A stretch of DNA of 64,000 nucleotides from Nageia nagi (GCA_050084985.1 JBITNC010000002.1:21204001-21268000), one strand, 5' to 3'. Counted from the stretch's first letter, positions 1,731 to 62,062 are shown. Notes: generated by a model from the sequence alone, not told the origin. Translations and numbers: made by a program.

Positions 1731-1811
1731 CGCAAAGGTCGATACTTCTTCTGCTTCAAATTTGATTTGAATTACGGGAAGTACCATATAAATAAAGCAG
1801 TAAGAGACATG

Positions 1812-1824
1812 TTTTTTTTATAGA
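1812..1824 (-). promoter_or_regulatory. Putative TATA box of the EXLA gene
   Basis: The minus strand reads CTATAAAAAAAA about 90 bp upstream of ATG 1730. An ACGT core (gacgtg) is adjacent at ~1827-1832. Confidence 0.5.
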
Positions 1825-16770: not shown

Positions 16771-19365
16771 TGAAGAAACAATATAAAATTTGTAAAACAT
16801 GTATTCATGATAAGAAACAAAGGGAATCATTTCTTATAGGATAATCATGCATAGAAAGAGGTGAATTAGAAATTGTATATTTAGATTTATGTAGTCCTAT
16901 ACAAGTTTCTTCACTTGAGGGAATTTATATTTTCTTATTTTTATTAATCTTTACAATAAAAAAAACTAGGTAAATTTTTCCAAAATAAATATAATGAATT
17001 TGAATTTTTTTATCAGTTCAAAGCTTTAGTTGAGAAATAAAGTGGAAATTGTATAAAAGTTTTGAGAACTTATGGAAGTGGTGAATTTTTGTCTAATGAG
17101 ATTTTAGATTTTTTGTAAAATAAATGATTTTAAAAAATTACGTCAACATATACATAACAAAATGAATTGTTGAAAGAAATATCAAAATCATTATGAAGTT
17201 CAAAATTTACCACATGAATTATCCTATAATATTTCTTGTTTTTATGTTTTTTGGTCATTGCATATGCACATGTTCCTAATTAAAATATACTATTTCTTAT
17301 TTTGATATTTTTTGTGCATTGCATATGCACATGTTCCTAATGAAAATAAGTAAACATTAGAGGATAAAGGAGAAAAGTATAATTTTGTAGGACATAGTAA
17401 GAATTCCAAAGTTTACAAAATATTTAATCCCATTACAAAAAATATTGTAATCAATCAAGATGTAGAATTTCTTGAAAAGAAATAATTTATGTGATAACAA
17501 CATAATAGAACAACAATAATATGAGGTAATTTTATGAATACATTCAAAATTCACAAGGAGTATCTTTAATTATGACACCATAAATCAATTTTGATCCACA
17601 AGGAGTATATTCCTCTTTAATAAGTTCTATTGATATCTCATATTCAAATGAAACATCAAGGAAAACTCAAATCCTAAAAAAAAAAATATGATATAACTAA
17701 ACAAGCATTTTTAATTATTGTTGTGATGAGTTAAATTTAGATTTTGTATTATATTCCACTTCTAATTGTGTAAAGTGGGTTGTAATGAGATTATTAAGAA
17801 TGAAAATGAGAAAAATTCATTAATAAATTAATTAAATAAATTGAAAGAAAGAACACATGGGAATTGCTAAATCTTTTGAATAAGTAGTAAAAAGGTAGTT
17901 TCAATAACTTAGGATATATTATTGTAAAACCATTGCACAAACATAAATATTAGATGTTGCTTTTTTTTATTTTGGCAATGATAACCCATCATATGTAGAA
18001 GGTGTTTCATGTAGATGTGAAATTAGCTTTCCTAAATACAATTCTAGAAGAAGTCTATATACATTTAAACTACTATCATGATTTTAATTATATTTTACAA
18101 CATCTTGAATTCTTTATGAAATTATCATTTTTTATTTTGATATTTAATAGGGAGGTTATTAAGATAAATAAATATAAAAGATCCCTTATATACTATTATG
18201 ATACGAAAAGAGGATCAGAAATCATTTTAGATATCTCTACAACACATCAAAACTATTGGTTAGATAAGATTTACAAGTAACATACAATTATAAGTTTATT
18301 TTGAGATGAAAATGTTAACTTTAATGTCTCTACAACTCATCAAACCTCTAGATTAGATAACTGCTAACAATAAAATATAAATTTATAAACAATCAATTCA
18401 AATTTTAACCATATGCATAAAAATGTGCAAACTTAAAGAACAACTAGACCAAAAGATTGTATCTAATTATGAAAGGATTATCTGTAGATTTAAATATTTG
18501 ATATAGACTAATTACTATAAGCAAATATTATGAATTCCTATTTTTCATTTCATTTAATTATTAGTTTAAACAATTACGAAATTCTACAAGAAAAATACTT
18601 TTATCATAACATTATTATTTAAACCATTAATAATATTTGATGTACCATAGCATAAGATTACAATTACTAGTAATTAAATACTTATACATTTTATTTATTC
18701 TGAATAGTTTTCCATGTAACATTATAAACCTTTATTTAGAAAGTGGCAATGACAAATGATTAAAACACTATACATGAGAAAAGGTCACGATAATAATCCT
18801 CTTCGATACCATACCTTACATGAGCATACAGTAATAAAAATTAATATTTATAATAAATATGTTCTCTATTTTTCACTATTGTTATTTCATGTGGCATAAG
18901 AGTATGATCCATGGTATATTTCATATCCCTATTATACTTTTTATTTTAATATCTCATGATTAATGTTTCACATATATGCATGATTGCAAGCTATGTATGG
19001 ATAATTCAATATTTTCTAAAGTTTTCTATATAATAATTATTTATTTTTTATCTTATGATTTCGCTAACAGTAATAATTATCAAATATGTTATAACTTTTA
19101 TATGTTTTAGTTTTTTTCACATTGTTATTAGTTCAAAGCACATAAACTTTAAAAAAGTTAAAAGAAATTTTACTAAGAATCACACGTACACTCTCTCCTT
19201 ATTTTACTTATATCAAACTTATAATCTGCTTTAATTTTTTCAATTTTAAGATTGTTGATTTCAAAATAAAAATATAAATATTTGTATATTTTATGATTGA
19301 TTGTTGATTTCAAATTATCATTATATTTATTATAAATATAATCTTAATCATAAGACATTAATTAT

Positions 19366-20352
19366 GTGTTTGCACTTATAGGAATTGTAATCTAATAAAA
19401 TATTTTTTATATTCTTCATAAGAAAGAATATTGCATTCAATCAAATAAAAGTTAAAATAAATAATAAGATAAATGTTGAACTACACTTTTTTAGATATAT
19501 CATTAGAAAATAAAATAACAACCACATAAGAAATATTAAAATTCAAATGGAAAATGTTATATTCAATCAAATAAAAAATATTATATACAAAAAATTTCAT
19601 ATTCTAATGTAATAGCTAAAATTCATATTATTATAATAAACTTTCATTACATAAATATTTAACTATGCATTTGTTTACTATAAATTTTATATATGATTTA
19701 AAAATATATACTTACATGTAATCTCTAAAAACTAATGAATATAAATTATTCAAGATACTATAAATTATTTTTATGTATAATCTTAATAATGTACATGATA
19801 ATAAAATAAATAATAATAATTTAAAAAAAAACTAAAATAATAATAATAGTAATGTAAGCATAATAATCCAAAATTAATTATGAAAAATTATCTTGATTTG
19901 TAGAGACATTTTGAAAAAATAAAAATAAAAAAGTATATATTTATGCACATATCAATAATTTTTTACTTTCAAAAGTATTAAAGAATAATGATTTTTGTTA
20001 GGTTATAAATTAATAGTTATAATAGTAAAATAGTAAAAATATTTTATTAGACATAATAATTCTAAATTGATCAAATGATTGTGAAAATAAATATTTATTG
20101 TAAATATAATCTTCTTGTAATCATAATATGTTTGCACATATAGAAATTGTAATCTAATAAAATATTTTTTATATTACTCACAAGAAAGAATATTGTATTC
20201 AATCAAATAAAAGTTATATTAAATAATAAGATAAATGATAAACTACACTTTTTTAGATATATCATTAGAAAACAAAATAACATCCACATAAGAATTATTA
20301 AAATTCAAATGGAAAATGTTATATTCAATCATAGAAAAAATATTATATACAA
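19366..20352 (+). repeat. ~230-bp AT-rich direct duplication (copies at ~19366-19592 and ~20127-20352)
   Basis: Colinear match tgtttgcac..attgtaatctaataaaatatttttt..aactacacttttt..attcaaatggaaaatgttatattcaatca..tattatatacaa. Confidence 0.8.
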
Positions 20353-20925
20353 TAATTCCAAATGAAATTAAATTAATAATATAATACTGAAAGTATTCAA
20401 TAAAAATAAGTTATATCTATTTCAAAGTATGATATACAACTATCTTTTTTAAAAGATCATATTGTAATTAATAACACATGTTATTATGGTAAATTTATTT
20501 TAATATTATTTAATTCATTAAATATTTATTATAAAAATTTATATTAGATAAGACGTATGAACTTCCAAACTCAAAGGAAAAAACTACGACATAATTAATA
20601 ATATCTATTAATAAGTCTTATATCTTGTATCAAAAATCATGGTTATTAATGTTCTTAACATAGCTCTTTTTTACATTTCGATTGTCTAGTTTATTCTCCA
20701 AAAATATTATGGACAGCAGTTGTCCCTAACCCCACTATGCTTATTGGAAAACACCACGTTCCACATAAAGACATGCCTTTTGGTAAATAGTTACCATTTA
20801 TTGGAATTGGATTAAAACACACCTGATCTCCTCGTTAAAGTTTGGCATTGGAAGTTAGTGGTCACTTCTTTTTGTTCAACTGTAACGCAGATATAATTCT
20901 TTTAACTGAAGCTAAACAAAACCAA

Positions 20926-32394: not shown

Positions 32395-35300
32395 GTTGGC
32401 AAGGTTTTCTTTTAGGACTAAGTTGCCAACTTTGAACTATTTAGATTTGATCTTTTTGCTATAGGATTTTTGGATTATAGAATTGTAGACACGTAGGTGT
32501 TTTAGAGCATTAAATTATTTTTCATATAGAACATTTAGTTGGGATAATATATCTTTCCTTCTATCCTCATCTAGAATGAAGCCATCTAGTGACATACAAA
32601 GAGATTCGATTTCTAGCTCAAGGGGAACTACGACTTTATCACCATACATCAATGAGAAAGGAGTTTTCCCTATGGAATTTATTATACTTTTCCTATAGGC
32701 CCATAAAGTATAAGGGAGTTGTTCATGCCAATATTTGACATATTTTATAATAGTTTTGGATAGGATACTCTTAATGACCTTATTAGAAGCTTCATCTTAA
32801 CCAATACCTTAAGCGTATAATGGGTACATAAATTTTATTCAATACAACATTTAGCACAAAATTTCTTAACTTTATTACCTTTAAAGCTAGTAGCATTATC
32901 CATGAACAATTTAGAAGGCACACAATATATAGAAATGATAAACTCAACAATAAATTCAACAAGCTTACCTCCTTTTACAAATTTCATTAGTATAGCCTCA
33001 ACCCATTTTGTGAAGTATTTAGTATTTGTAATGATAAAATTAAGGACATCTCTTGAAATAGGATAAATTTTACCAATAAAAGCAAGTGCCTAAATAGAAA
33101 AATGCAAATGAGATACAATATAATGCAAATCATAAGAAGGAGAAGGTTGAAGACTAGAATTTTTTTGATATTATTCATACTTTTTAATATGCAATTCATA
33201 ATCTTCAAGCATAGTGGGCTAATAATATCCTAGTTTAATCAATTTTTGATAAAAAAATCTAGCACTAAAGAGTTTACCACATTCACCATCATGACCTTGG
33301 TGAAGGGCCATGATGTCTACTTCATGCATCATTAAACATCTAAGAAGAGCACCATTAAAATATGTTTTACACAATAAATCACCTATGATGACATAGTTAG
33401 CTACTAGTTTTTAATTCTAATTCTAGGATTACAATCAAAGATAATAATTATGGCATCATCTTTAATATGATTGAAAATATCTTGATACCATTCATACACA
33501 TTGATATAAGTAGCAGAAAATCAATGATCCTCAATGAAATCTTAACAACAAATTCATTAGAAGGCTATCCTATGTTTTTTATTATGAAAATAGTCTCTTT
33601 GTATTCTATAGAAATACGGGCAAGGGAAGTGGCACTAGCCATTGCATTAGCATACCTATTATTTTCTATTAGAATATTTCAATTTCATACTAATTGAAGT
33701 ATATGAGGAGATTCTACACCATTTTCTTTTATGGTTGTAACTTGGGATCTTTGGTGTTATAGGTGTTGGATACTTGCATCATAATGAGTTGAGAATCACC
33801 AAAGACTTTGATCTTTTTTACTTGCAAAGTATTACACCCTTTAGACCTAAAATTAGAGCCTCATAGTCTACCATGTTGTTAGTGCCATTAAAACTTAAAT
33901 GATTAGATATAGGGATAACATCATAATGCATGCCCTTGCTCTGTGAATACACTTAAAACCATAGAAGAATAGGGTCCACTCATTATTTTTTATGAAACCA
34001 ATTAAAATTTTGAGAATTCAAGTTTAGGAATAGATCATGAATGTAGGGATGTAGTGGTAGTGCTTGATTCAACGATTTTTGGTTTTCCACTTCCTTTAAA
34101 ACTTATTCTTACATACTGGACACTTTATTTCCTAGGTGATTCAAAATGAAAGATATACTATAGTCTATCCCTTTATAGACTTCTAACCAATAAATATCAA
34201 ATCAAATTCTTGAAGCAACATTACCCATTTTTCAGCCCTTTTGTATAGGTAGGACTTAGACATGAGATATTTGAGAGGATCAACCTAAGCTATGACATAA
34301 GTTGTATTTCCAAGTGTGTAATATTTAACTTTATAGTTCATAAGACTATAGAAAAATACATCTTTTCAATTGGAGTATACCTTATCTCATAATCAAGTAA
34401 AGTCTTATTGATATAGTAGATTGCTCTTTCTTTATTATTGACATCCTTTTGAGCTAGCATTACCCCTAATACACATAATGTTGATGAAACATAAAGTAAC
34501 AAAATATGTTTAGAATTGTAAGGGTTTAAAATTGGAGCATTAGTAAGATACCTTTTGATGTTTTCCAAATCCTTTTGACACTTTTCATCCCAAATAAACT
34601 TCTCACCTTTCTTTAGTAAATGAGAAAATGAGTAGGTCATATTTTCTAGCTGAGAAATGAACCTTTTAATAGCTTGGAATTTTCCTTAAATAATTCTCAA
34701 CTTATTCAAGTTATGAAGAGGAAGAAAATCAATAATGGCTAAAACTTTCTTAGGATACATTGTTGAACTTCATGTGACATTAAGAGGGGGGGTGATTCAG
34801 TGTGTCTAAAAACTAAATGTAAATTTTTCACTTTTGAAATCAAAGTGATGCAAAACTAAAATCAAATGAGTAAGCACATCAAAAATAACACACAACACAA
34901 GATGTAACAAGGTTCACTAGGTTGGCTACATCCTCAAAAATTACTACTTGGACTCCAATTTAAATCCACTTCAAGGAATAGCATCAACTACCCTATCATT
35001 TTGTAGCAAAAAATGTAAGGAGCATCAAATCCTCTTATGAAGCACCCACTTGATGAACTGAAATAAAGAAGATAAAGGATTTATTACCATTCACACAAGA
35101 TCTTGAATGATATAGGTCAAAAACACTTCCTCTACTCACTCTTATATTTGCTCACTTTGTCTCATCAATACTCCACACACAATCACAATTATTTCTACAT
35201 ACACACTTCTCACACTTGTCTAAAAAAATATGAAATGAATTTGTAACACCTAGAATATTAAACACCTCCTCTACTAATAAGATTCTCTTAACTCATTGCA

Positions 35301-38300
35301 TATGTTGCTCTATAAAGATGAGACCTAATACTATGCACACAAGTAAACCAACTACCAAACTATGCATATTAAAAAAAAAATTCAATTATTGATAAGATTA
35401 TGAATATCAAGAGACTAGATTAGTTACTTATTCAATTTGAAACATCTTCTTTCCAAAAGCTCTTCCACCAAATCAGTAGCTTCAACTATTCAATTCATAC
35501 TAACCTACTTTGCACACTTGTTAATTAAAAATACCACAAAATGAACCAAGAAATTGTTGCTAAAATACTAGGGGGAATATACTTCATACACTACCATTAC
35601 CCAAACCTAAGAAACTCAAAATATTATCGAACTGGTTCATGAAAATACATTGATTGGATCCAAAATGTGTGTTCCAAGTCCATATGGCACAAAATGGTAT
35701 TACATTTTTTGTATAAGTATAAAATGACCTCTAATAACTTGTACTTATTTTAGATATTCTCAATAGGAAATAGTTTTCAAAAGAGACACCATATCATAAA
35801 AACTCTCCAATCTAAAAATGGGAGTCTATTTCTTTTGATAAGAAATAAAACATATTCTCAAAAACTTCTTCACTCAATAATCAAACTTAGTCCAAAAGTA
35901 TTGAGTCGCATGTCACTTGGAGAGAGAAAATAATTACACACAACGAAGATGCCTCAAAGAATCTGTTAAACGTCATAACTAGACTAGATGCATTTCATCA
36001 AACATTTCATAAATTTCCTCAAAAACCATAGCAAGCATTTCATCAAACACATACCAAGCATCCTTGTTCATTGAATTCTAAACCTTAGATTCACATGAAC
36101 AAAAAATTAAATTTGTGAGATTTTTCATATTGATTACAAATACACAACCAAAAATCAAAGATCTTAACTAAAACTCATGGAATTCCTCTTTTTCTTTGCT
36201 ATCCCAAAAAGTGCACCAAACTACAAAAAGTTACTAAGTGGCATTTTGTAACTTGTACCATTTCTACCTCAGTTTCCACCTTCATCCAAAATTTGGTCCA
36301 CATATTTTGGTATATAGTACTATATATGTTCTAAATTTTAACTTCTAACTCATCATTATTTGCTTGCAATTTGACTTGCATGAAGCTAATTTCACCCAGA
36401 TTTTTGACATGTCCAAAATCCACAAGAATGCCCAAAAATAAACCAACATGAAATTTGACCATTCCAACTCTACACATAAGTTTGTTATCAACCCAAAAAA
36501 TAGTCCAAACTATATCTAGTTGTCTGCCACCTTCCATTTGCATTTTGGCCCTCTTGGCAGCTTTTGGTAACTCATGACAACTTTTGGTCCCTTTGTCATT
36601 TTTGCATTTGATAACTTTACAAATCTTGTCAATGTCATTCCTATGACATTTGTAACCATGGAAACCTTATGCACATAGATCTCATCATGTTTACAACAAT
36701 GATAATATCATTGCATCATACTCAACAATCTCCCCCTTTAGAATTATTAGCAACACATGCAAAAACTTATTACTCTTCTCCCTATTTGATAAAAAATACA
36801 AAGGTGTACCTTGGACTCCTCCTGAGTCCATACACATAATACTCAGGTGTAAATCAATATATAAGAGAACATGATTATACCAAGAGTAAAAAGATAAGAA
36901 AGTACAAAATTACTCCCATTGAGATTGTGCATCCAAAAGCTAGTCAATGTTTAGGCAATGTCACCACTTCCAATTTCTTTCATAGGTACTCAAAAATTTC
37001 CTTAGGTAATGGTTTAGTAAAGATATATACTACTTTCTCTAATGTGGGAACAAATTTTAACTTTAACTCTCCTTCTACAACCTTTTCCTTTAAGAAATGG
37101 TACCGAATGTTAAAGTATTTTATTCTTGAATGCATGAACAAATTCTTGGAAATATTGATTGTACTTATGTTATCACACATAACTGAGATGGGATCAATGA
37201 TATTAATACCTAGATTCTTCATCATTTATTTCATCTATAAAACCTATGTACAACATGATGTTGTTGTTATGTACTCTACTTCCCATTGTGGACAATGATA
37301 TTGATTCCTATTTCTTTTTATGCCAACCAATAAGATTATTTCCCAAGTAAAATGTACTGCCATTGGTGCTCTTCCTATCATTTGCACACCCTATGCAATT
37401 TGCATCTAAGAAAGCAATGAGTGTGAAATCCTTCCCCTTGGGATACCATAGGCTATATTCCATTGTACCTTTGAGGTATCAAAAAATTTGCTTTATTGTT
37501 ATCACATGTATCTCCTTTGGATTCATTTGAAATCATGCAACCATGCATATGACTTGAAGTATGTTAGGTTTGGTAGCTATCATATACAATAGGCTTCCAA
37601 TCATTGACTTGTACATAGTTTGATCCACTGATGGGGACTTATCATCTTTGCTAAGCTTGTAATCTATCATAATAGGAATACTCATAGGCTTGCAATCCTC
37701 CATAGTGAACTTTTTCAACATCTTCTTTACATACTTGATATACAAAAGAAAAATACCATTCTTTAATTGATTAACTTTTAAACAAAGGAAATATGAAAGT
37801 TCATCTATCATTGACATCTCAAAGTCTATTTGCATCTAGTTAGCAAAGTCTTTGTATATTTCATCCTTGCTACCTCTAAAAATAATATCATCAACATAAA
37901 CCATAATGATAAATTGATAATTATTTTTAGATTTATTGTAGAGATTACTATCCACCATACCTTTTTTGAAACCTTGATGATGAAGATATGCATCAAGCCT
38001 AGAGTACCATGCTCAAGGTGCCTATTTTAAACTATAAAGTGCCTTTTTTAGTTTGCATACATATTTAGGTTCTCACTTACCTAAAATCCATTCATCTCCT
38101 CAATATAGACTTCCTCCTTAAGCTTTCCATTCAAAAATGTTGATTTTACATCAATCTAATAAACCTTGAAGTTCTTGTACATAGCCAAAGTAAGAAACAT
38201 GCGAATAGCCTCTAATCTAGCCATAGGAGAAATGGTTTCTTCAAAATCAATACCTTCAACCTGAGCATACCCTTTTCAAACCAAACTTGCTTCATTTCTT

Positions 38301-41300
38301 ATGATTTTATCATCTTCATTAAGCTTGTTATGAAAAAACCACTTGGTGCTAATCACATTTTTGTTCTTGGTCCTTGGTACCAACTCCCAAGTCTAATTCT
38401 TTTTAATCTGGTCTAACTCCTCATCCATTGCCTTGATCCAACTCTCATCCTAACTTGCCTCTATACCATTATTTAGTTCTATACTTGAAAAAAGGGAATA
38501 TGTTCTTATTGTTCTTCTCCTTTTTTGAACTCTAATATCTGGATCTCCAATTATTTGTTCACTTAGATGTTCTTTTTGTCATTTACTTGTTTTATGTTTT
38601 TGGTTTCCCTCCATTTCTAAATCATTGTGTGAGTCATCAAAGCCACTCTTTGGTTATTTTTATAGTTGTTTCTCTATATCATCTACCTTGATGTATTCTT
38701 TATAAACTAAAAAAATTTCATCATTTCCTTTTGGAGGTATTTGCATCTCATCAATCTTAACATTCGCACTCCCAACAATTTTCCTGAGTGTTTTGGTGTA
38801 ACACTTGTAAGCCTTGCTTTTTATTTAGTAACCAAGGAATATACCTTCATCCACTCTATCATCAAACATGCTAAGGTTTTATTCCATCCTCTTGATGTAG
38901 CACTTACTCCCAAAGACTTTGAAGTATCTTGTTGATGCCTTTTTACTAAACCATAACTCATAAGATGTCTTATTCTTGTGGGGCCTCAACTTACACCTAT
39001 TCTAAATATAAATCATTATGTGGACTACTTCTTTCCAAAACATATCAGCTATGTTGCTTTCTTTCAACAATGTTCATACCATTTCTTGAACTGACCTGTT
39101 GTTTCTTTCTATCGCAACATTTTATTGATGTGTCCTTATTGCAAAAAGTTATCTCCTAATACCATACTTGTGATAAAACTCATTGCAATTATCTGAAATA
39201 AAATCATCTCTTTTGTCTAATTTGATTCTCCTCCCAACCTAATTTTTTGCTTGATTCTTGAAGGTCTCAAATTTTCCAAGTGCTTCTAACTTGTGTTTCA
39301 TAAATAATATCCATCTCATCCTAGAATAATCATATATGCATAACATGAAGTAGTTATTCCTTTTATATTTTGCATCCTCATAGGACCACATAAATCAATA
39401 TGAACAAGCTCTTAGGGTTTGCTAGAATAATACTCCTTTGTCTTAAAAGTGAATCTAGTGAGCTTACCCTTTTGACACAAAGAACAAATACTATTTGGTG
39501 GTCTCTTGATGCTTGGAATATCTTGAATTACCCCCTTTGAACTAATTTTGACTAAGTTATCAAAGTTGATGTGTCCAAGCCTCTTATTCCAAAGCCAATC
39601 TCATCCTCCTTTCTAAGTAAGTATGATCCCTCTAAAGTCTCTGTCAATGTATACAAATTTTCAAAATTCCTTATGCCAATTACTACCAATTTACCATTAT
39701 TTGCTCATTTGATCTTGTACCTTCACTTCTTAAAAATCACATCATGACCTCTATCACAAATCTAACTTACACTCAACAAGTTATGTTTTAGACCAATCAT
39801 AAATAAAATCTCTTTTGATCTAATTTTACCATCACTTATCTTCATTGTGCCTTTACTGACTATCTTTGCTCCATTATTGTTCCCAAATATGATCGAACCT
39901 CCTTCATATTGTTGCAACTTTTTAAATTCTTGTTTATCACCTATCATATGACTTGAGCATCCACTATCTAGTATCTATGGAGCTGGTTTATCCTATGCTT
40001 TAAGAGTTATTTGTACTATTAAGGATTCTTTTACTTCTTTTGACTTTTCCTTCTCTTTTCATTCCTTCTTGATACCTATCTTGGTTTCCTATATTGTCTC
40101 TTCCTATTTGGTTTGTTGTACCTATCTCTCTAGAATCTTTCTATTTTGTCTCATGCCCTATAACTAAAAAATATCTTCATTGAAATTAATTTCAAGAGAA
40201 TGTACTCTTGAAATTTCTTACAATGTGACCATAGTTGTGACAATTATAACATTCTATAGCATAATTTATCAATGGTGCAAATGTATTTCTACTTGAGAAG
40301 TTTCTTGGACTTATATCATATTTGCACTTAGATATTTTATGTCCATACCCATTGCACTTAAAATAATAACCTGAAAAGGATTGAGTGAACCTAGGTTGTG
40401 GGCTTTTCCACATTGTAGTAGGTACCAGGAATCTTCTTCTCCTTTGATGTGCTACATGTGTGAATCCATCATTTTCCATATTCTTATCATTTCTAGTAGT
40501 ATTATTTTGCCTTGCATAAGATGGTTTTGCTTGATTGACCAATTTCTTTTTTTCCTCAATTTCTAATTTTTTATTTGTATCTTTAGAGGTCTTTCCTTCT
40601 TCAAAACCCATATAAAATTTAATATTTGGTGATCTTTGGCTCTTTATCATTTCATCTAACTTTAAGGATCCTCTCTTGATTTTATGATGCCCACTAACCT
40701 TATGACTCATCTCTTTCAATTGAAGACTCAACCTTGTAATCTTTGATTCCAATTTGTTGTAGTACACAACTTTGGTAGTGAGCTATTCTTCAATATTCTC
40801 TATTGTTTTTTGCATTTTTTCTAGTTGCACTTTTAAGCTTATGATGATTTCATTTGCATCATCACATTTTTAATAAGTTTTTCTATGCTTTTTCTTTTTT
40901 ATCTCTAATTCTTCTAGAGCTGTAATTAGTTCTCCTTCCAAATTAACTTCTGCTTCAATTTCTTCTTCCTTGATTTTCTTCTAATTTTTATTTTATTTCT
41001 AGTTTTTTATCTTCAAATGTATGAAGAGAGCTTTATCAAACTCTTTTTCTAAATCTTCATTTGAGCTAGATTTTTATGAACTAGTGTTCTTGGAAATAAA
41101 TCTTTTCTTCTTGAAATTACCTTTTTCTAAAATTTGATTTTGTCTTCTAGCTACTTTTCTCTCTGTACAAACTTTAATCATCTTGGTTCTTTTCTTTTCT
41201 TGGATATTTTGCTACAAAATGCCCTATGCCTCCATAATCAAAACATTAAAAAAGAAATTTTCCTTTGTATTTTTCTTTTCCCTTTTTCATCTTTCTAACA

Positions 41301-41928
41301 AAGTGCATTTCTAATTCATTTAAAGATTCTTCTAAATGTGATCCTTATTTTTCTTTTATATTTTTATTTGCTTTAAAAGTAGCTTCCCTATCTATGGATT
41401 TGGACTTACCTATTCTCATTTCATAGGCTATTAGTGAACCATGTATTTCATCCATACTAAAAGCATTTAAATATTTTGCTTCTGAGAGAACTATAATGTT
41501 CTATTTTACTCATCAAAATGAGTTACATATATAGGCTTTGTGAAAGCCATTACAAGACAAGCTAAATGGTTGAGATGCAATATTCTCACACCATAACAAA
41601 TATCACAAATAGCACACCTACGTGAACTACAAGACAATAAGTGATGCCTATCCTAACAAATAGGCTAAGCATGGAATATGGTCAACATAGACCAAGTATT
41701 CCTCACAAGCTAATAAATGGAAATACTCTTAATCCTAATTAATTAATCTATTAACTTAGGACTTAGGGATATGTAGGGTATAATTCCAACATTCTCCCCT
41801 TTAATGCTAAGTAACTCATGCAAGAGTTCTTAAGCATTACAAAGTTGAAAGAAACATAACCTTTTTCATTTCCTCCAATCATACAAAAGAAAATCAAAAT
41901 TTTCAAGAAATAAGTGTTGGCACTCCTT

Positions 41929-43869
41929 TCACGTGTTGTATGGAGTTTTCTTCATTGTTGTTGATGTTGCTCCTTCATTGAGTGCCTCCTTTTGTTGAGT
42001 AGCTCCCCCTTCAACAAAAGTCTCTATGGTCTTCAACAACCATATTCTCTCTTCTTCATGATCCTCAAACCATTCTTGTAGTGACATTCCATCAATGCTA
42101 TAAGTATTGGTTTTCAAGAACCAATCTCTCTCACAATGGTGTTTGAACCATTCTTTCATCTCTCTCTCATTTTTTATATGGTGTTTAAACCATGTTTGCA
42201 AGTAGTCATTTGCTCTTGCATTCATTACATCATAGCATACTCCACATGAGTATGTTCTCATCATTTCACAATAGTCATTATACCACACTACTCTCTCACA
42301 AATGTTTACACACACTTTGAGACAATACATAGCCACACATTGGCTAATTACATATGCAACCAAATGTTGCTCCTCACACAAAGTTTCACTCAAAAAATCA
42401 CACTTTACTAAGATTTTACAATCTTCATTTGAATCCATATGATCCAAGTTTTTCATCAATGTCTTCTCCCAAGGAAGACTCTTCAATGTTGTCTCCATGA
42501 TGCAATCTTCAAGCAATGCCTTGATAAGACATTCTCCTCCATTCTCCATAGCCTTCAAGCTATCCTTCACACATCTAATCAGCAAACATTCATTAGTAGC
42601 ATTAGCAAATAAGCTAAAAAATAAGAAATCATCTCCTCTAATGATGTTTTGGTGAGTAGATATCCACATTAATCTTTCCTTTGATGTTGCTTTTAAAGCA
42701 ATCATTTCTTCATTTATGATAAGGAATTCCCATGATTCCTCTTTGCATATTGTTGCCTTTATAAGACAACTCTCAAGATCTTTTGATGCCTCCATTTCAC
42801 CATGAAGTCCATCAATGGCTATCTCATTATCTTCTATCTCCTCCTTGAGATAGTCATCTTCATTCTCCACTCTTGATAAGTGGTCTTCTCCATTGAGGAT
42901 GAAGTTAATAGCCTTCATCTCATCTTTATCAATGATCTCTCTTGGATCATTATCCCATATTGTCTCCATAAGACAATCATCATGTTGTGCTTCCTCCATG
43001 AAGCATTCCTCATCTTCTCCTCTCTTCTCAACAAGAAGAAGATTCTCACATACACTCTCCTCCTTGAGAGTTTCTTCTTGGTGATCTTCACATTGGGTGT
43101 CTTCACCATCAACTTGAGCAATGGAATCATCATCCCATATGATTTGAGCCTTGTCTTCATTCACTCCATGTGAGTGAGTTTCAGCCATGGAACACTCCTC
43201 CTCAAGGGTGTCTTCATCTTGTTCTTTATCAAAAAAGAACTCTTGCCAACATTGGGTTGACTCCTCCTCATTCTCCATCATAAGAATGGGTTCACAATAT
43301 GCCTCTTCCACAAAGCATTCATCATCATATGGCTGAGATGGTGTCTTCAATGAACACTCTTCATGACATGCCTCCTCCATGAGACATTCTTCATAACAAG
43401 GCCAATCTAATTCCTCTCCAAGGAATTCTCCTTCATAGTTTTCATCATATGTGTCTTCATCATAAGACTCCTCTAAAAAACTTTCAAAGAAGCAAGGCTC
43501 CTCCTTGCTTACACAATCTCCATGATTGTCATCTTTGGCTTTATGGGAGTCCTCCTCACATCCATAAGCATATTCTAATGCTTTCCAAGCAATTTGGGCT
43601 ATTTTACATTTTGCAATGAGAGGTAAAATATTTGGTTTCATTCCTCTCCTAATATCTATAAGAGCTAAGCAATTTTCATATTGCTTCTCTTTCTTCTCTC
43701 TTTTCTCCTCTCCTTCAAGAGACTTCCAAGATGGAGGTTCATCATACCCATCTTCTATAATGCTCTAAAGGTCCTTAGCTTTGAGCAAAGTCTTCATTAT
43801 TATGCTCCACCAAGCATAATTTTCTCCATCAAACTTGGGCACCTCCAAGTGTTCATACATGGTGTCCAT
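41929..43869 (-). CDS. Copia Gag N-terminus fused to a long acidic Cys/His-repeat domain of unknown function (570-aa ORF 41929-43641; in-frame extension to ATG 43869 across one TAG)
   Basis: The same frame upstream reads MDTMYEHLEVPKFDGENYAWWSIIMKTLLKAKDL*SIIEDGY (Copia gag DUF4219-type motif; the TAG at 43765-43767 replaces the conserved W). It continues ILPLIAKCKIAQIAWKALEYAY (UBN2-type gag start) and then ~540 aa rich in E/D/C. Confidence 0.8.
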
Positions 43870-45060
43870 TTCTTCAAAAAACTTTCATTACTGTACAGAC
43901 CTTCGATGGGACAGTCATTAAATGGATGGCTTAAACTTATCCAAATTGGCTGAAATTTTTACAAGATGTTCTACACACCTATATCTATCTTCAGTCCAAA
44001 TTTCACCTGAAAATGAGCAATATATCAAAAGATATATGTGTTGCAAGTTGACTATTTTTTCCAGGCCTGTACACGTTTTTCTGATGACAATCTAATCTCC
44101 ACGTTAGGCTCTCCTCACAACTTCCTTGAGGTTTTGCTGGAAATGCTTCTATGTGGAATTTCACCTTTATATAGGCTATGAATGTATTTACAGTCTTGTC
44201 CACTAGATCTGCACCTATACTCTTCTCCTATTTAACAGGGTTGGATGCATGAAAAAATACAATATCTCTGTCCTCACACAAACTCCTCAACACACCCCTA
44301 GATATCAATAAGATATTATAAACAATGCTGGCAGAGAAGCAATACCAAGAGGATCTTACTGTTGAACATGTTGGCTGACCTACACTATCATGCTACACTC
44401 TACACAATGCGCAGGCCCTTTTTAATTGATCATACAGCAAGATGAAGTCACTCCAATACAGCTTTGTCTATCCCCAAGTGCATCAGCAGATCAAAGAGTT
44501 TAAGAGCAGCTTGTTGCAGCCTCCATGCTACCTACAAGCCTCTAACTTTGTCTAACATTAGCCTCATAGCCCCTCACAATCCTTAGCTACATGTCTCACC
44601 ATTTCATATCACGCAGCAACCTCTACATAAGACTGCACAACATTTTTCAAACACATAGCATCCCTTTTAATGGAACACACATCGCCTCTTTCAAGATATA
44701 CTCCATCCAACATTCGAGTTTATACTTCAACAAGGTATTTTATCAAATGACAGCAACTTGTAAAGGACAGCAACACTTCACGCCTCCTCCAGCTCCTTCA
44801 GCGCATGCACTACAGAGAGGGATCGGTTCGTATCCCTTCTCCTCATGCAAGCTTCACGCAAACTTCACGCACCATAGCATGCGAATGTTTCCTTCACGTG
44901 AACGTTTCCTTCACCATGTAGACCATATCAGTTCATACCTCCTCTGCGAGCAATGCACCTCCGCGAGCAACGCTACACTGCTTCTCCTCCGCGCGAGCTC
45001 CTTCACGCAAATGAAAGACTCCTTGTCCTCCTCCGCGCTATCTTCTGACCAGCCTCGTTC

Positions 45061-45207
45061 AGCAAAACGACTCCTTAGCAACATAGCACGATAATGTTTG
45101 TCTAGGGACATCTGCCTTTCTGATGAAGTTGGAGTACTCTCCCCTTCGTGATGGCCATCAGCAGGAGGCAGCTTTGAAAGAGCATTCTCTTCATCCAATC
45201 CGCTCAC
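45061..45207 (-). pseudogene. Captured fragment of a GTE (BET-family bromodomain/ET, GTE8/9/10/11-like) gene C-terminal region
   Basis: SGLDEE...EGESTPTSSERQMSLDKHYRAMLLRSRFA matches the conserved plant GTE motif EGESAP.ERQ.SPDKLYRAALL(R/K)xRFAD, recognised from memory. It is truncated right after RFA. Confidence 0.75.
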
Positions 45208-48200
45208 AACCCCTTGGCTCCTTCACAACCCCTTGGCTCCTTCAAGCACGTCTCCTTCGAGTCACAGCGAGCACGACTCCTCCGAGTGATTCGTTGTTCC
45301 TTCAACTCCTCCTCTGCGCAAGCTTCTGACCAAATGGTTTTCTCCTCCTCGCACATCACGTGAACATCTTCTCCTCACGTGAAAATGTTCTCATTCACGG
45401 ACTCAGGCAGAACGGACCCGACCCAGGACTCCTCTCATGACAGTAGTCCAAACAAATTAATTCACCTCCTCCAGCAACGTATTCCTCTTTGACCTCCGCC
45501 GCTTCTCAACGCATGCTCTCCTTTCTGCTGTGCATGGGTTTCCTTCAAACCTCATGCAACTATCTTTTCTCCAAGCAAATGTTTAGTCTATTTCAGATTC
45601 TCTTTCAATCTTTAAAATAGCAAACACTACTTCAGCTAACTCATGTAGCTTCTTTTCAGAGGCTTTGGATCTCACACTTGCAAGAATTTGATAAATTCTT
45701 TGCAATGCATCCACAAGCTCAATTGATGACAGTCCTTAGAGGAGCTTGATAAGATCCTTCAAGACTTCACCCACTCTAACCCAATAATCAAATCAGCTCT
45801 GATACCAATTGAGAGAACTATAATGTTCTATTTTACTCATCAAAATGAGTTACATATATAGGCTTTGTGAAAGCCATTACAAGACAAGCTAAATGGTTGA
45901 GATGCAATATTCTCACACCATAACAAATATCACAAATAGCACACCTACGTGAACTACAAGACAATAAGTGATGCCTATCCTAACAAATAGGCTAAGCATG
46001 GAATATGGTCAACATAGACCAAGTATTCCTCACAAGCTAATAAATGGAAATACTCTTAATCCTAATTAATTAATCTATTAACTTAGGACTTAGGGATATG
46101 TAGGGTATAATTCCAACAGCTTCTTCTATAGCAAAAGCTTTTGAATTAAATCTTTAAGGAAGTGAATGTAATACCTTTTTCATAGTGATTGAGTCTTCAA
46201 TATTTTCTTCAAGGCTACTAATTGCATTGATTACTTCATTGACCATGTATTCTTCTATGTTTTCATCTTCATTCATATTTAAACTCTCAAACTATGCTCG
46301 ATGAGTTTGAAGCTTAGCCTCCTTTATTTTTACATCTCCCTCATGAATATTTTTAGTTTATCCCATATGTTTTTTACCAACTCATAGTTCATCACTTTTA
46401 CCAACTCACTATCCACCATTCTATACATGATGGCATTCTTGGCCTTTAAGTTATTTTTATATACCTTCTTATCCACTGCATCTATAATAGGTATGGAAGG
46501 TCTGGTATAGCCATTTTTTGTGTCCTCTTAAATCTCATATCCCATGGCACTAAGATAAGCTTGCATCCTGAATCTCCAAAAAGCATAGTTAGTATCATTA
46601 AATAATGAAGCTTTATTTGAAGAGATCCCTTCAGTTGAATCCATTGTGTCATGTCCAAGATCTCCCTATTGGATTAATCTAAAATACAAATTTTCTCTAA
46701 TACCAATTATTGAACTTCATATGACACTGAGAGGAGGGATGAATCAATGTATCTAAAAACTAAATGCAAATTTTTCACCTTTGAAATTAAGATAATGCAA
46801 AATTGAAATCAAATGAGCAAGCACATCAAAAACAACACACAACACAAGATGTAGCAAGGTTCACCAGTTTGGATACATCCTCAAAAATGACTACTTGGAC
46901 TCCAATCCAAATCCAACCATAAAATGTTATAATGTTTTACAACACCCATTGAAAATAATGGCATTAACTACCCTATCATTATGTAACACCAACTACAAGG
47001 AACATCGAATTCTCTCACTAATTACCCACTTAATGAACTTAAATAAAGAAGATGAAGGATTGATTATCATTCATGCAAGATCCTAAATGATCTAGCTCAA
47101 AAACACTACCTCTACTCACTCTTCTATTTGCTCACTTTGTCTCATCAATACTCCACACATACTCTCAATTATTTCTACACACACACTTCTCACACTTGTC
47201 TAAAAAAATATGAAATGGATCTATAACACCTAGAATATTAAACATTGCCTTGTCATAAAGAAAAATTGAATCCCATTACTTATAAGATGCTCTTGACTCA
47301 TTGCATATGCTACTTTATGAAGATGAGACCCAATACCATGCACATAAGTAAACCAACTGTCAAAATGTGCATATTAAAAAACAATTCAAGCATTGACATG
47401 ATTATGAATATCAAGAGACTAGATCAGTTACTTCTTCAATTTGAAATATCTTCTTTCCAAAGGCTCTACCACCAAATCTATAGCTTCAATTATTCAATTC
47501 ATACTAAACAACTCTACACACATGTTAGCTAAAAATGCTTCAAAATGGACCTAGAAAATTTTGCTAAATTACTTGAGGGAATATACTTCACACACTGCCA
47601 ACACACAAACCTAGGAAACTCAAAATATTATTGAACTGGTTCATGAAAATACATCAATTGGATCCAAAATGCATTTTCCAATTCCATATGGCATGAAATG
47701 GTATTATGATATTTGCATAAGTATTGAATGATCATAAATAACCCATATTTGTTTTAGATATTCTCAAAAGGAAATAGTTTTCAAAAAAAACACCATATCA
47801 TAAAAATTCTCCAATCTAAAAATGGAAGGGCTATTTCATTTAACAAGAAATAAAACATATTCTCAAAAACTTCTTCACCCAACAGTCAAACTTGGTCCAA
47901 AAGTATTCAGCAACATGTCACTTAGAGAGAGAAAATAACTATACACAACAAGGATGCCTCAAAGAATCTACCATGTATCATAACTAGACTAGATGCATTT
48001 TGTTTAATGTTTCACAAGTTTCCTCAAAAACCATAGCAAGCATTTCATCAAACACATACCAAGCAACCTTGTTCACTGACTTCTAGACCTCAGATTAAGA
48101 TGAACCAAAAACCAAAGTTGTGAGATTTTTTATGTTGCGTACAAATATACAACTAGAAATCAAAGATCTCAACTCAAACTCATGGAATTTCTCTTTTTCT

Positions 48201-50055
48201 TTATTATCCCAAAAAGTGCACCAAATTGCAAAAAGTTATTAAGTGGCATTTTGTAACTTGAACCATTTCTTCCTTAGTTTTTTTCCTTGATCTAAAATAT
48301 GGATCAAATATTATTGGTATATAGTATTATATATGTTCTAAATTTTAGCCTTTGACTCATCATATTTTGCTTATAATTTGACTTGCAAGAAGCTAATTTC
48401 ACCTAAATTTTTGACTTCTCCAAAATCCACAAGAATGCCCAAAAATGAACCAACATGAAATTTGATCATTCCAATGTTGCACACAAGTTTCTTATCAATC
48501 CAAAAATTGATCAAAACCATATCTAGTTATTCATCATCTTCCATTTATGGTTTGGCCCCCTTGAGAGCTTTTGGTAACTCATAACAACTTTTGGTCCCTT
48601 TGTCGTTTTTGCATCTGAAAACTTTGCAAATCTTGTCAACATCATTCTTGTGACATGTGTAACCATGGATACCTTATGCACATTAATCTCTTTATGTTGA
48701 CAACAATGACAACACTATTGCACCATACTCAACATACACCTCTTATAGAAAAATGAACCCAAGCAATTTACTTGATTAGACTACAAATGCACCCTTCTAA
48801 GGTTTCAATTTCAACTTGTACTCTCTTATTATTTGAAAATATTTATCAAATATAAAATGTGATCATCTTTGGTTTTGGATTTTGCTATGATGTTGTCAAC
48901 ATATACCTCAACATTGTCATGGATCATATTGTGGAACATACTTATCATGGCTCTTTGATAACTTACACTTGTAATCTTTAGACCAAAAGGTATGACTACC
49001 CAACAAAATGTACCCAAATGAGTAATAAAAGTTATCTTATGTTGGTCATCCTTATTGATCCTAATTTTATTATATCTTAAAACTCTATCCATGAATGATA
49101 AAACCTCATGGCTTACTGTTGAATCTATAGTCATGTCAATGTTAGGCAAAGGAAAGGTATCTTTAGGACATGCCTTATTGATATCCCTAAAATCTATACA
49201 ACATCTTATTTCACCATTAGGCTTAGATATTTATACAATGTTAGAAATCCATGGAGAAAAATCAATGCAAACTATGAAACCAACAACAAGATACTTCTCA
49301 ATTTCCTTTTTAATAGCAAAGGCTATCCTAGGATGCATCTTTATAGGCTTTTGTTTAATTGGTTTGATATTTTCATTAACAACTAGTCTATGTGACAAAA
49401 TTAGGAGCAAGCATAGGCATATAAAAATGAGACCAATAAAAAATGTAAAAAACTCTTTTAATAGTAGGTGATACCTTACTCATTCTTCCAAGGTTAACAA
49501 AGCTCATATTTTGATCAATCATAGGTCCTCTTGGGTACTGATGTTTACTTTTACTATTTCTTCACTAACTTAGGATATTTTTTCATTGAGTTTGGGAGGC
49601 ATAGGTAATTCTCCCAATCCTACATCCAAAATTAGCCATAAGATATTGGAATAATAGAGCGATAGTGCTAGGAACCCAATGCCATCACCCCATTAAGGGA
49701 TAGGAAGATTGACTATGGAGTTCAAAGTACCTATACCTAGGACTAACTCAAGGAAACACAAAAAAAATTAATGAAAGATGAACAAAAATGAAAATAAGGG
49801 TGATGCTCTAACATGTAATGTTTGCATCATTTATGCAAACCTTCGTACCAAAATATGCTTGATATCATATGAAACATGCTACGAGCCTCTTTTCATTGGA
49901 CTTGGAGAACTCACTCAGTGCCCTCAAATTCTCAATGATGCATCATCATTTTTGAATATATCCACACAAACCAAAGTTGTTTGAGTTAAGAATGGGTCTA
50001 CATAATAAGCTTGTAACTCTTCTAATAGACCATGCTTCATTATATAATGCAACCA

Positions 50056-58391: not shown

Positions 58392-61300
58392 ATACCCATA
58401 TGATAGAAATTCAATTTTTATAGGAATCTATGGGTGGAAGTAAGAAGTTGATTCCACTTAAGAGTAAGTATGAGGAAAAAATTCAAAGTCAAAAAAATCA
58501 ACATCCCGATATTAAATAAATTGGGATCCTAAATTTTGAGATGCTGATACTAATCCCAAAATATCAAAAGCTTGATATAGGTTCAGGTCATGAGCCTATA
58601 TTGGGATCTCGATATGTACTAGTATCAACAACTCAAAATTTGGGATCCTAATTTATTTAATATTAGGATGTCAATTTTTTTGACTGATCCCAAAATATCA
58701 AGATCCTCATCTATGAAACTTAAATACCATGATGCAAGCTATGGAACTCACTCTATATCTCCATGGTGTAAAACTTCCAAATAGTCCTAGATGTAATGAA
58801 AAATTTCAAGATCCTAGTTTTAGTGCTCCTCATGTCCCTATATTTCTTCATAAACCTTTGTCCATGTAAGCTTGAGTAACCATCACCATTGTTTTGGGTT
58901 TTTTGTAATAAAATATCAAGTTTTTGTGGAATTTTTCATATTGTATAAACCTAATTATGACCTTTATGTGAATAAGAATGATCTTTTGTGATTTTTTTTG
59001 GAATTTTATTTTTGTGATCTTTAGACTCATACTGTAGAAACCTAAGTAGCATGATAAGAATGATCTTTAGGTGAATGGTAATGGCTATGAGTAATGAATT
59101 TTGATAGTAAACATACCTCCTAATACCTACCTTAAGGAACCACAAAGCAAATAAATGTAATAAAGAGGATAATAATCACTTTTTAGATATATACCTCCAT
59201 TAAGTAAACTTCTATTTATAGAAAGTTTTTACTATTATCTAATTTAAATGAGGCTCAAAATGTGAAATATTAATGAATTGAAAGAAAAACCTTACTAGCC
59301 ATGATATTAGACCTATAATATTTTAATAATTGCTTAGAATAAATGTTGTTGTGTAAGTCTTGGTTATGTCATCTAAATACCATAAAGGATGAAAATGATT
59401 TTATCTTTTTATCGCCTACTCTACAAAATCATTAGAAAAACCTAAAAATATATCTATAATTATAAAATCATTATACAATCCTTATCAACACTAATATCAA
59501 TTTTTAACTTACTAAAAAATTAGATTAGGCTACAAATAAAGTAAACCTAAATTTTGTTAGGAAACCTCTTTAAAAATGCTAGAAGATGTAATCTCATATG
59601 ATAACTTTGATCTTATACCCATATGATAGAAATTCAATTTTTATAGGAATCTATGGGTGGAAGTAAGAAGTTGATTCCACTTAAGAGTAAGTATGAGGAA
59701 AAAATTCAAAGTCAAAAAAATCAACATCCCGATATTAAATAAATTGGGATCCTAAATTTTGAGATGCTGATACTAATCCCAAAATATCAAAAGCTTGATA
59801 TAGGTTCAGGTCATGAGCCTATATTGGGATCTCGATATGTACTAGTATCAACAACTCAAAATTTGGGATCCTAATTTATTTAATATTAGGATGTCAATTT
59901 TTTTGACTGATCCCAAAATATCAAGATCCTCATCTATGAAACTTAAATACCATGATGCAAGCTATGGAACTCACTCTATATCTCCATGGTGTAAAACTTC
60001 CAAATAGTCCTAGATGTAATGAAAAATTTCAAGATCCTAGTTTTAGTGCTCCTCATGTCCCTATATTCTTCATAAACCTTTGTCCATGTAAGCTTGAGTA
60101 ACCATCACCATTGTTTTGGGTTTTTTGTAATAAAATATCAAGTTTTTGTGGAATTTTTCATATTGTATAAACCTAATTATGACCTTTATGTGAATAAGAA
60201 TGATCTTTTGTGATTTTTTTTGGAATTTTATTTTTGTGATCTTTAGACTCATACTGTAGAAACCTAAGTAGCATGATAAGAATGATCTTTAGGTGAATGG
60301 TAATGGCTATGAGTAATGAATTTTGATAGTAAACATACTCCTAATACCTACCTTAAGGAACCACAAAGCAAATAAATGTAATAAAGAGGATAATAATCAC
60401 TTTTTAGATATATACCTCCATTAAGTAAACTTCTATTTATAGAAAGTTTTTACTATTATCTAATTTAAATGAGGCTCAAAATGTGAAATATTAATGAATT
60501 GAAAGAAAAACCTTACTAGCCATGATATTAGACCTATAATATTTTAATAATTGCTTAGAATAAATGTTGTTGTGTAAGTCTTGGTTATGTCATCTAAATA
60601 CCATAAAGGATGAAAATGATTTTATCTTTTTATCGCCTACTCTACAAAATCATTAGAAAAACCTAAAAATATATCTATAATTATAAAATCATTATACAAT
60701 CCTTATCAACACTAATATCAATTTTTAACTTACTAAAAAATTAGATTAGGCTACAAATAAAGTAAACCTAAATTTTGTTAGGAAACCTCTTTAAAAATGC
60801 TAGAAGATGTAATCTCATATGATAACTTTGATCTTATACCCATATGATAGAAATTCAATTTTTATAGGAATCTATGGGTGGAAGTAAGAAGTTGATTCCA
60901 CTTAAGAGTAAGTATGAGGAAAAAAATTCAAAGTCAAAAAAATCAACATCCCGATATTAAATAAATTGGGATCCTAAATTTTGAGATGCTGATACTAATC
61001 CCAAAATATCAAAAGCTTGATATAGGTTCAGGTCATGAGCCTATATTGGGATCTCGATATGTACTAGTATCAACAACTCAAAATTTGGGATCCTAATTTA
61101 TTTAATATTAGGATGTCAATTTTTTTGACTGATCCCAAAATATCAAGATCCTCATCTATGAAACTTAAATACCATGATGCAAGCTATGGAACTCACTCTA
61201 TATCTCCATGGTGTAAAACTTCCAAATAGTCCTAGATGTAATGAAAAATTTCAAGATCCTAGTTTTAGTGCTCCTCATGTCCCTATATTTCTTCATAAAC

Positions 61301-62062
61301 CTTTGTCCATGTAAGCTTGAGTAACCATCACCATTGTTTTGGGTTTTTTGTAATAAAATATCAAGTTTTTGTGGAATTTTTCATATTGTATAAACCTAAT
61401 TATGACCTTTATGTGAATAAGAATGATCTTTTGTGATTTTTTTTGGAATTTTATTTTTGTGATCTTTAGACTCATACTGTAGAAACCTAAGTAGCATGAT
61501 AAGAATGATCTTTAGGTGAATGGTAATGGCTATGAGTAATGAATTTTGATAGTAAACATACCTCCTAATACCTACCTTAAGGAACCACAAAGCAAATAAA
61601 TGTAATAAAGAGGATAATAATCACTTTTTAGATATATACCTCCATTAAGTAAACTTCTATTTATAGAAAGTTTTTACTATTATCTAATTTAAATGAGGCT
61701 CAAAATGTGAAATATTAATGAATTGAAAGAAAAACCTTACTAGCCATGATATTAGACCTATAATATTTTAATAATTGCTTAGAATAAATGTTGTTGTGTA
61801 AGTCTTGGTTATGTCATCTAAATACCATAAAGGATGAAAATGATTTTATCTTTTTATCGCCTACTCTACAAAATCATTAGAAAAACCTAAAAATATATCT
61901 ATAATTATAAAATCATTATACAATCCTTATCAACACTAATATCAATTTTTAACTTACTAAAAAATTAGATTAGGCTACAAATAAAGTAAACCTAAATTTT
62001 GTTAGGAAACCTCTTTAAAAATGCTAGAAGATGTAATCTCATATGATAACTTTGATCTTATA
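58392..62062 (+). repeat. Near-identical tandem triplication, units 58392-59614, 59615-60835, 60836-62059 (~1.22 kb)
   Basis: Units are colinear and the only differences I saw are 1-bp indels. The identical spurious ORF recurs at 58848, 60070 and 61293. Confidence 0.97.

Follow-up and report, generated by a model that had tools for sequence, protein, structure and literature searches.

The 64-kb stretch of Nageia nagi DNA considered here (GCA_050084985.1 JBITNC010000002.1:21204001-21268000; 64,000 nucleotides, hereafter the window) carries at 41483-46118 a long terminal repeat (LTR) element with a single long Gag-derived coding frame and no polymerase (pol) genes (Table 1). In the sense of the element each LTR reads TGTTGG...TCTCTCA; the two are direct repeats with the 5-bp target-site duplication (TSD) GCTTC on both sides, and in a direct alignment they agree at 309 of 309 positions, with 0 mismatches. 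The other LTR-like repeat pairs of the window are 78-92% identical. The primer-binding site (PBS), TGGTATCAGAGC, is of the kind that pairs with the 3′ end of plant initiator tRNA-Met; it has no other match within the window, where 0.10 would be expected by chance, and no tRNA genes were found there. No inverted repeats were found at the ends of the element, whose termini are the direct LTRs. A first-pass annotation of this DNA had given the coordinates of the element exactly, and its identical LTRs, perfect TSD, Met-type PBS, polypurine tract (PPT) and visibly diverged other LTR pairs are all borne out by alignment; its orientation of element and open reading frame (ORF) needed correction, as both lie on the minus strand.

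Two observations bear on how and when the element arrived. At 1.3e-8 per site per year, the rate commonly applied to plants, 0 differences over 309 bp give a 95% upper bound of ~0.37 million years (Myr) for the age of the insertion. The element is therefore young, but its 309-bp LTR is too short for finer dating, and the earlier description of it as recently mobilised is true within that resolution. Read evidence was taken from Logan contigs, of which those of runs X1 (organism A) and X3 (organism B) are DNA, while those of X11 and X12 were taken as RNA by guess; 1,036 contigs from X1 and 561 from X3 could be placed on the window. In one X3 contig, 41477 is followed at once by 46119, so that 4,641 bp (the element and one TSD copy) are missing, with six letters common at the joint; this is the expected empty site and proves that the element inserted with a TSD. 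The flanks on either side are repeats too, with summed depths of 70-1500.

No pol-type Pfam domain (protease, integrase, reverse transcriptase (RT) or RNase H) was found in any interior ORF of at least 40 amino acids, as the first-pass annotation had it, and the interior, at 4,018 bp, all of which can be assigned, is too short for a pol. What it does contain is a frame of ~646-647 codons (43869->41929) interrupted by two stops; the two remaining minus-strand frames have 45 and 85. The chance of a 570-residue ORF at such a composition is ~1e-21, and the frame is clearly a real coding sequence. Its beginning is Gag: in the piece upstream of the ORF, the first 34 residues match DUF4219 (E-value 5.8e-6; 26.3 bits, just below the cut-off of 27) and Retrotran_gag_3 (E-value 4.7e-4). 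Similarity to Gag is limited to the first ~104 codons of the frame, and stops ~27 residues into the 570-residue ORF. The ‘long Gag-derived ORF’ of the earlier account is thus real as a coding frame in which a Gag N-terminus is joined to an orphan domain, but only ~104 of its codons are Gag, most of them upstream of the 570-residue ORF and behind a stop at codon 35.

At that stop, and at the one that ends the ORF (41929-41931), the contigs of all runs covering them read sense codons, so that both stops are private to the studied copy or its sublineage, and the studied copy, given the stop at codon 35, does not encode the family protein. Upstream of gag its leader runs for 1,940 nt and contains 41 ATGs. 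Because the identical LTRs leave little time for change after insertion, the broken frame was most likely present already in the RNA that was reverse-transcribed, and this copy would then have been mobilised wholly in trans.

The protein fares better at the level of the family. A word-based homologue search through 5.8 billion proteins returned a sole relative, P0001 (641 amino acids; 100% query coverage and 50% identity by BLASTP), which has a complete Gag N-terminus, is open throughout, and continues past the PPT into an LTR whose start resembles that of the studied one; because it runs on in this way, we take P0001 to be another copy of the same element family. It matches Retrotran_gag_2 at 29.8 bits (cut-off 27) over profile positions 1-75 of 172 only, and its residues 1-99 are 74% identical to the Gag part of the window. 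At the other end, a C-terminal core of ~210 residues is ~88% identical to the window ORF, and the N-terminal half is rich in insertions and deletions (indels). The CCHC knuckle (CX2CX4HX4C) is absent from both the window ORF and P0001. When 1.84 billion representatives were searched exhaustively with HMMER, 19 matches only were returned, all of them unnamed fragments of 43-194 amino acids. In two of these, P0009 and P0014, the end of the Gag N-terminal part is joined to an acidic, Cys-rich start at ~46-48% identity, and since they share this junction the Gag/acidic fusion is old within the family and no accident of the studied copy. That the frame stays open in so diverged a copy as P0001 despite many in-frame indels argues for selection on the ORF at the family level. 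The earlier claim that the element keeps its own maintained protein may therefore be right for the family, as judged by P0001, but not for the studied copy, in which only ~27 Gag-like residues follow in the remaining ORF.

Neither the metagenome protein scan nor the viral contigs yielded further copies. In the DNA contigs, whose summed depths are not copy numbers, depth is 300-3000 in the LTRs, at 45550-45809 and across both Gag part and ORF, and falls to 0-46 over 43984-45375, with 44332-44505 excepted. The core of the family is high-copy and the middle of the leader is not; together with P0001 this upholds the view that the element belongs to a repeated family and is no single copy. Putative RNA contigs of X11 and X12 run along the ORF at ~95% identity.

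The greater part of the family protein is a region of ~540 residues following the Gag part, with 24.5% Asp+Glu, 33 Cys, a net charge of about -90, and internal repeats of the forms EECxMEE (two copies) and WFxxH (three copies). Searches of Pfam, NCBIfam, PDB sequences and Atlas gave no match to this region, which to judge from its sequence has no relatives outside the element family. An AlphaFold2 model built on 23 sequences has a mean predicted local distance difference test (pLDDT) score of 50; residues ~38-300 are predicted to be disordered and the C-terminal half to be helical, and the sole confident helix, 423-463, holds the best-conserved and most hydrophobic stretch of the family (Kyte-Doolittle 1.86 over 19 residues). 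Given the abrupt end of Gag-profile similarity at position 75 of 172 and the good conservation of the C-terminal half (the ~88% over ~210 residues against P0001), one might suppose that the acidic region is a graft, a captured host gene, and did not evolve in place from the rest of gag. We think this improbable: 1.84 billion representatives hold no match beyond element-derived fragments and Atlas holds none, and the indel-rich N-terminal half with its internal repeats fits expansion in place.

The leader is built of parts with different histories. An LTR-PBS pattern search of metagenome contigs found a sole contig, L001, which shares with the studied element the PBS, 84% of the LTR, and more than 90% of the 143 nt of leader next to the PBS (45795->45653), so that this leader segment is better conserved than the LTR itself; beyond ~45655 the two are unrelated, and the Gag-fusion ORF is absent from L001. 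Because L001 carries LTR, PBS and the 143-nt leader before an unrelated interior, one cis module would seem to have been joined to different interiors. A break at 45653-45660 is also found in the X11 and X12 RNA contigs and at an X1 DNA joint, and since L001, X11, X12 and X1 all diverge at one place, the family may be described as having a conserved cis module with a variable region behind it. For the conserved segment the predicted fold is unexceptional (z = -1.67), and that it is a packaging signal is conjecture.

Within L001 itself, the related LTR (274 bp), the same PBS and the conserved leader lie at 1935-2365, followed by the unrelated interior, and an opposite-strand Copia lies at 5606-7653 (RVT_2 at 5606-5992, gag-pre-integrase at 7321-7653). 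We also note that the DNA contigs of X1 and X3, as well as L001, stop matching within the first 76 nt of the LTR (46043-46118, 41716-41791), and that a loose end, TTAATACTTTA..., is common to those contigs at one LTR position, in both LTRs. As the matches break within these 76 nt, the start of U3 is specific to the studied sublineage.

Between the high-copy leader and the sequence next to gag lies the low-copy block, in which G+C content reaches 53%, compared with 30-40% elsewhere. It contains a piece of a host gene. A contig of X12 (3,583 nt, depth 139) matches the element only at 45062-45207, with 8 differences in 146 positions (~5.5%), and this contig and a like one of X11 are unlike the element on both sides of the matched part; because the matching contigs continue unlike the element at both ends, we take 45062-45242 to be a piece of an expressed host mRNA. 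The coding sense of the fragment is that of the element; its place is in the leader, ~1.2 kb upstream of gag, and it does not share the frame of the ORF. At four of the five differences listed for the fragment the element has T or A where the transcript has C or G (C>T/G>A-type). Past the breakpoint the host transcript translates to DTILKAQEK directly after the element's ...YRAMLLRSRFA, and ...DTILKAQEK is presumably the conserved C-terminal motif of plant GTE/BET bromodomain proteins, a name that no tool confirmed. If organism A is the species of the window and the transcript is the donor, the capture would be on the order of ~2-4 Myr old; and because it would then be much older than the studied insertion, the cargo would have been carried through at least one retrotransposition. 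The first-pass annotation had spoken of host gene fragments in the leader: there is at least one from an expressed host gene, but it amounts to one 181-bp piece in one copy.

Other features of the block may be mentioned here. A perfect 19-bp tandem duplication (45204-45241) lies at the upstream edge of the host fragment, and a 26-bp imperfect direct repeat (45026-45051 / 45307-45332, 88%) brackets it; both may be traces that the capture left behind. At the approximate borders of the block neither a TSD nor terminal repeats were found. The repeated piece 44332-44505 shows neither a long open frame nor an Rfam match, and another repeat or organellar DNA is a candidate source for it.

Considering these observations as a whole, we are fairly confident that the element is a young insertion, mobilised in trans and with older, passive cargo, and that its family is a high-copy, non-autonomous LTR family derived from Ty1/copia. 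A helper in trans is required because the element is without protease, integrase and RT/RNase H. An autonomous Copia would supply the pol products for reverse transcription and integration, and its nucleic-acid-binding Gag would presumably do the packaging. The element has kept all of its cis signals: LTRs, the initiator-Met-type PBS, the conserved 143-nt leader segment and the PPT. The frame of the family would encode ~104 Copia Gag residues (DUF4219 and the first 75 of 172 positions of Retrotran_gag_2) followed by the ~540 acidic residues, and our best guess is that the retained Gag N-terminus could let the family protein join or modulate the assembly of helper particles. The studied copy, coding-defective and with its ATG-rich leader, would most likely have been moved wholly in trans. 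The host fragment would have been captured before the studied insertion and then carried along through retrotransposition, its likeliest origin being template switching by RT onto a co-packaged mRNA; the sense orientation of the fragment fits such template switching, but does not prove it.

Could the family protein do more? The Gag-N/acidic fusion might represent a class of accessory protein not recognised before, which would serve as decoy or adaptor and use its retained Gag N-terminus to enter or disturb particle assembly of the helper Copia; the conserved helical C-terminal half with its hydrophobic helix would supply a new activity, and the modular leader could make the family unusually prone to picking up foreign RNA. 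We offer this as speculation and think it rather unlikely.

The first-pass annotation had gone further in another direction and proposed an active Pack-type retro-vector family that systematically shuttles host fragments and relies on a Gag-fusion protein maintained by the family itself. The insertion is indeed young and the family repeated, P0001 has the family ORF open, a host mRNA fragment does occur, and the leaders of the studied copy, L001 and the RNA contigs differ downstream of ~45655. Yet the break at codon 35 in a recently inserted copy indicates that the protein is not needed in cis, and the evidence for shuttling comes down to one old 181-bp fragment (~5.5% diverged), situated in the leader and not in the ORF; a further copy with cargo was not seen. 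The term Pack is, moreover, defined for DNA transposons with terminal inverted repeats (PMC13317346). As there is no evidence of systematic cargo shuttling, we did not retain the retro-vector proposal and give it little credence.

It is still less probable that the 1.5-kb block entered after integration at the DNA level, as filler DNA at a break or as a nested insertion, and was never retrotransposed. The block is missing from most family copies, its base composition differs and there are short duplications near the host fragment, all of which speak for such an event. On the other hand, with 0 differences between the 309-bp LTRs there was little time for a complex insertion of several pieces, ~5.5% divergence from the host mRNA would be hard to gather after so young an insertion, and neither a TSD nor terminal repeats mark the approximate borders of the block. 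That the identical LTRs are an assembly artefact, through collapse or mis-joining of two copies of a high-copy family (collapse would also yield perfect identity), is scarcely credible in view of the perfect 5-bp TSD on both sides, the independent contig of another run that joins the flanks exactly at the TSD, and an interior that is a single coherent element.

Several points weigh against the reading that we prefer, that of a trans-mobilised Copia derivative with older cargo. No autonomous partner was found in the window (tblastn of P0001) or elsewhere. The tblastn comparison of P0001 with the remainder of the window turned up no other gag of that type, so the Copia that hosts the insertion is not the helper, and a search with the Gag N-terminus for an autonomous relative returned P0001 only, which says little because its length filter excluded full polyproteins. 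The 25 differences listed divide into 9 synonymous and 16 non-synonymous, so that selection on the ORF is only weakly visible, and the structure model, being poor, gives the acidic domain no specific activity. That the X11 and X12 contigs are RNA is a guess, and they show neither level nor strand of transcription. As for the cargo, Pfam, Atlas, homologue searches and a text search for the motif were all blank with regard to a GTE/BET identity, and its age assumes that organism A is the species of the window and that the transcript is the true donor and not a paralogue. Finally, the host element is repeated, and the empty-site contig may derive from one of its paralogous copies; it shows insertion, not a presence/absence polymorphism.

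Table 1. The LTR element, its parts, and the older element in which it sits (window coordinates).
Feature	Position	Strand	Remarks
Host element, old decayed Copia type	34759-48613	minus	Receives the studied insertion in its interior; from repeat comparison
Left TSD copy, GCTTC	41478-41482		Repeated directly beyond the other LTR
Whole LTR element	41483-46118	minus	4,636 bp; interior 4,018 bp
3′ LTR (element sense), 309 bp, TG...CA	41483-41791	minus	Identical to 45810-46118; high-copy in DNA contigs
PPT, AAAGGGGAGAA	41792-41802	minus	Adjoins 3′ LTR; read from sequence
570-amino-acid ORF	41929-43641	minus	First ~27 residues end the Gag-like part; rest acidic, Cys-rich orphan
Gag N-terminus, 76 codons, DUF4219 / copia-gag type	43642-43869	minus	In frame with ORF; in-frame stop at codon 35 (43765-43767)
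Stretch typical of the family, immediately upstream of gag start	43870-43994	minus	Boundary approximate; depth 695 in bin 43810-43983, then 46
Low-copy block, ~1.5 kb	43995-45519	minus	Borders about +/-30 bp; mosaic with short degenerate repeats
Repeated piece within block, 174 bp	44332-44505		DNA depth 370/193; putative RNA contigs 26/77
Expressed host-mRNA fragment, sense, 181 bp	45062-45242	minus	Within RNA contig
High-copy leader	45520-45795	minus	Candidate cis (packaging) segment in PBS-proximal 143 nt
PBS, TGGTATCAGAGC	45796-45807	minus	Initiator tRNA-Met type; 2 nt past 5′ LTR
5′ LTR (element sense), 309 bp	45810-46118	minus	Candidate TATA, CTATATATG, at LTR position ~259
Right TSD copy, GCTTC	46119-46123		Read from sequence

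The surroundings are those of a gene-free nest of decayed retroelements, with a G+C content of 29.7% over the whole window. The Copia that received the insertion has LTRs of ~1.85 kb (~34759-36606 and ~46706-48613) that are 86-88% identical, and retains an RVT_2 remnant at 37533-37835 on the minus strand. Apart from the 570-residue ORF, no ORF of at least 200 amino acids was found in the window, nor were rRNA or host genes, or any Rfam family at gathering score; a snoRNA-like (small nucleolar RNA) Rfam match at 42630-42726 falls below threshold (32.9 bits against a 50-bit cut-off) and was taken as chance. Elsewhere in the window, a tandem array at 58392-62062 comprises ~3 copies of a 1,222-bp unit (99.8-100% identical, 27.7% G+C), each with an internal imperfect inverted repeat of ~200 bp (78%). 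This array, which is the only near-identical repeat of the window besides the studied LTR pair, could be a young long-unit satellite or small LTR elements in tandem. Three direct-repeat pairs, 5519-6945 / 8676-10103 (84-87%, spacing 3,158), 14201-15159 / 15821-16760 (78-84%, spacing ~1,610) and 19361-19593 / 20123-20355 (92%, spacing 762), probably represent either small LTR elements of some age or tandem duplications.

Were the family protein functional, the family would be a parasite of a parasite that encodes a tool of its own, half a Gag with a lineage-specific domain, to exploit or modulate an autonomous element, which would bear on how non-autonomous LTR elements out-compete their helpers. 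That a copy was still mobilised although its frame is broken and its leader includes 1.5 kb of foreign sequence limits the importance of the protein in cis. The capture of a gene fragment is ordinary here, and adds a dated example of a capture apparently older than the insertion that carries it.

By its TG...CA LTRs, 5-bp TSD, PBS, PPT and Copia-type Gag domains the element is a Ty1/copia-derived LTR retrotransposon, and by its want of protease, integrase, RT and RNase H it is no autonomous Copia. With large retrotransposon derivatives (LARDs) and miniature terminal-repeat retrotransposons (TRIMs) it shares non-autonomy and mobilisation in trans; their interiors are non-coding, whereas the studied family keeps a frame of ~646-647 codons that is open in P0001. 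In yeast, the p22 protein of Ty1 is the C-terminal half of Gag and is made from the autonomous element itself. By analogy, the family protein, likewise a Gag fragment without the RNA-binding parts, could act on the assembly of full-length Gag, but it has an N-terminal piece of Gag joined to a foreign-looking domain, and sits on a non-autonomous element. Pack-MULEs and Pack-CACTA elements are DNA transposons with terminal inverted repeats (PMC13317346), and the studied termini being direct LTRs, the Pack label does not apply.

Much nearer are the TR-GAG elements, non-autonomous LTR elements that retain gag and consist of LTRs, PBS, PPT and one gag-type ORF without pol (PMC4350172, 2015). Like them, the studied family is non-autonomous, repeated and apparently transcribed, with LTRs, PBS and PPT, no pol, and a single ORF of Copia-gag ancestry (UBN2 / Retrotran_gag_2 type). 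TR-GAG1, however, encodes a complete GAG precursor, UBN2 and zinc knuckle included, in less than 4 kb (PMC4350172), whereas the studied family has positions 1-75 of 172 and no CCHC, the studied copy measures 4,636 bp (~3.1 kb without the low-copy block), its frame is interrupted, and the family carries ~540 orphan acidic residues. A survey of sugar beet recognised 28 gag/prot-only families, and found gag/prot-only remnants, sharing of modules and untraceable helpers to be common in non-autonomous LTR elements (PMC13570524). The patchy domains, gag remnant, shared modules and lack of a traceable autonomous partner seen here are all of this kind, but neither gene-fragment capture nor a conserved orphan domain was found in the searched text of that survey (PMC13570524).

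Capture of gene fragments by LTR elements has been described for Bs1, Veju and BARE-2, with template switching by RT proposed as the mechanism for Veju and BARE-2 (PMC13317346). Bs1 of maize is, like the studied copy, a pol-less LTR element with host-gene pieces in sense orientation, plausibly acquired by such template switching; its captured pieces join a translated hybrid ORF (PMC13317346), whereas the fragment studied here is a decaying piece of the leader that has no part in the ORF. Gag-retaining elements (PMC4350172, PMC13570524) and fragment capture (PMC13317346) being already described, the suggestion in the first-pass annotation of an undescribed system does not stand. The element was set beside known kinds by their descriptions, and may match a family that already has a name. 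Its unusual feature is the conserved orphan acidic domain of ~540 residues fused to half a Gag on a non-autonomous element; its closest kinds are the TR-GAG-type non-autonomous elements and Bs1-like gene-fragment capture, of which it is an unusual variant and not a new system.

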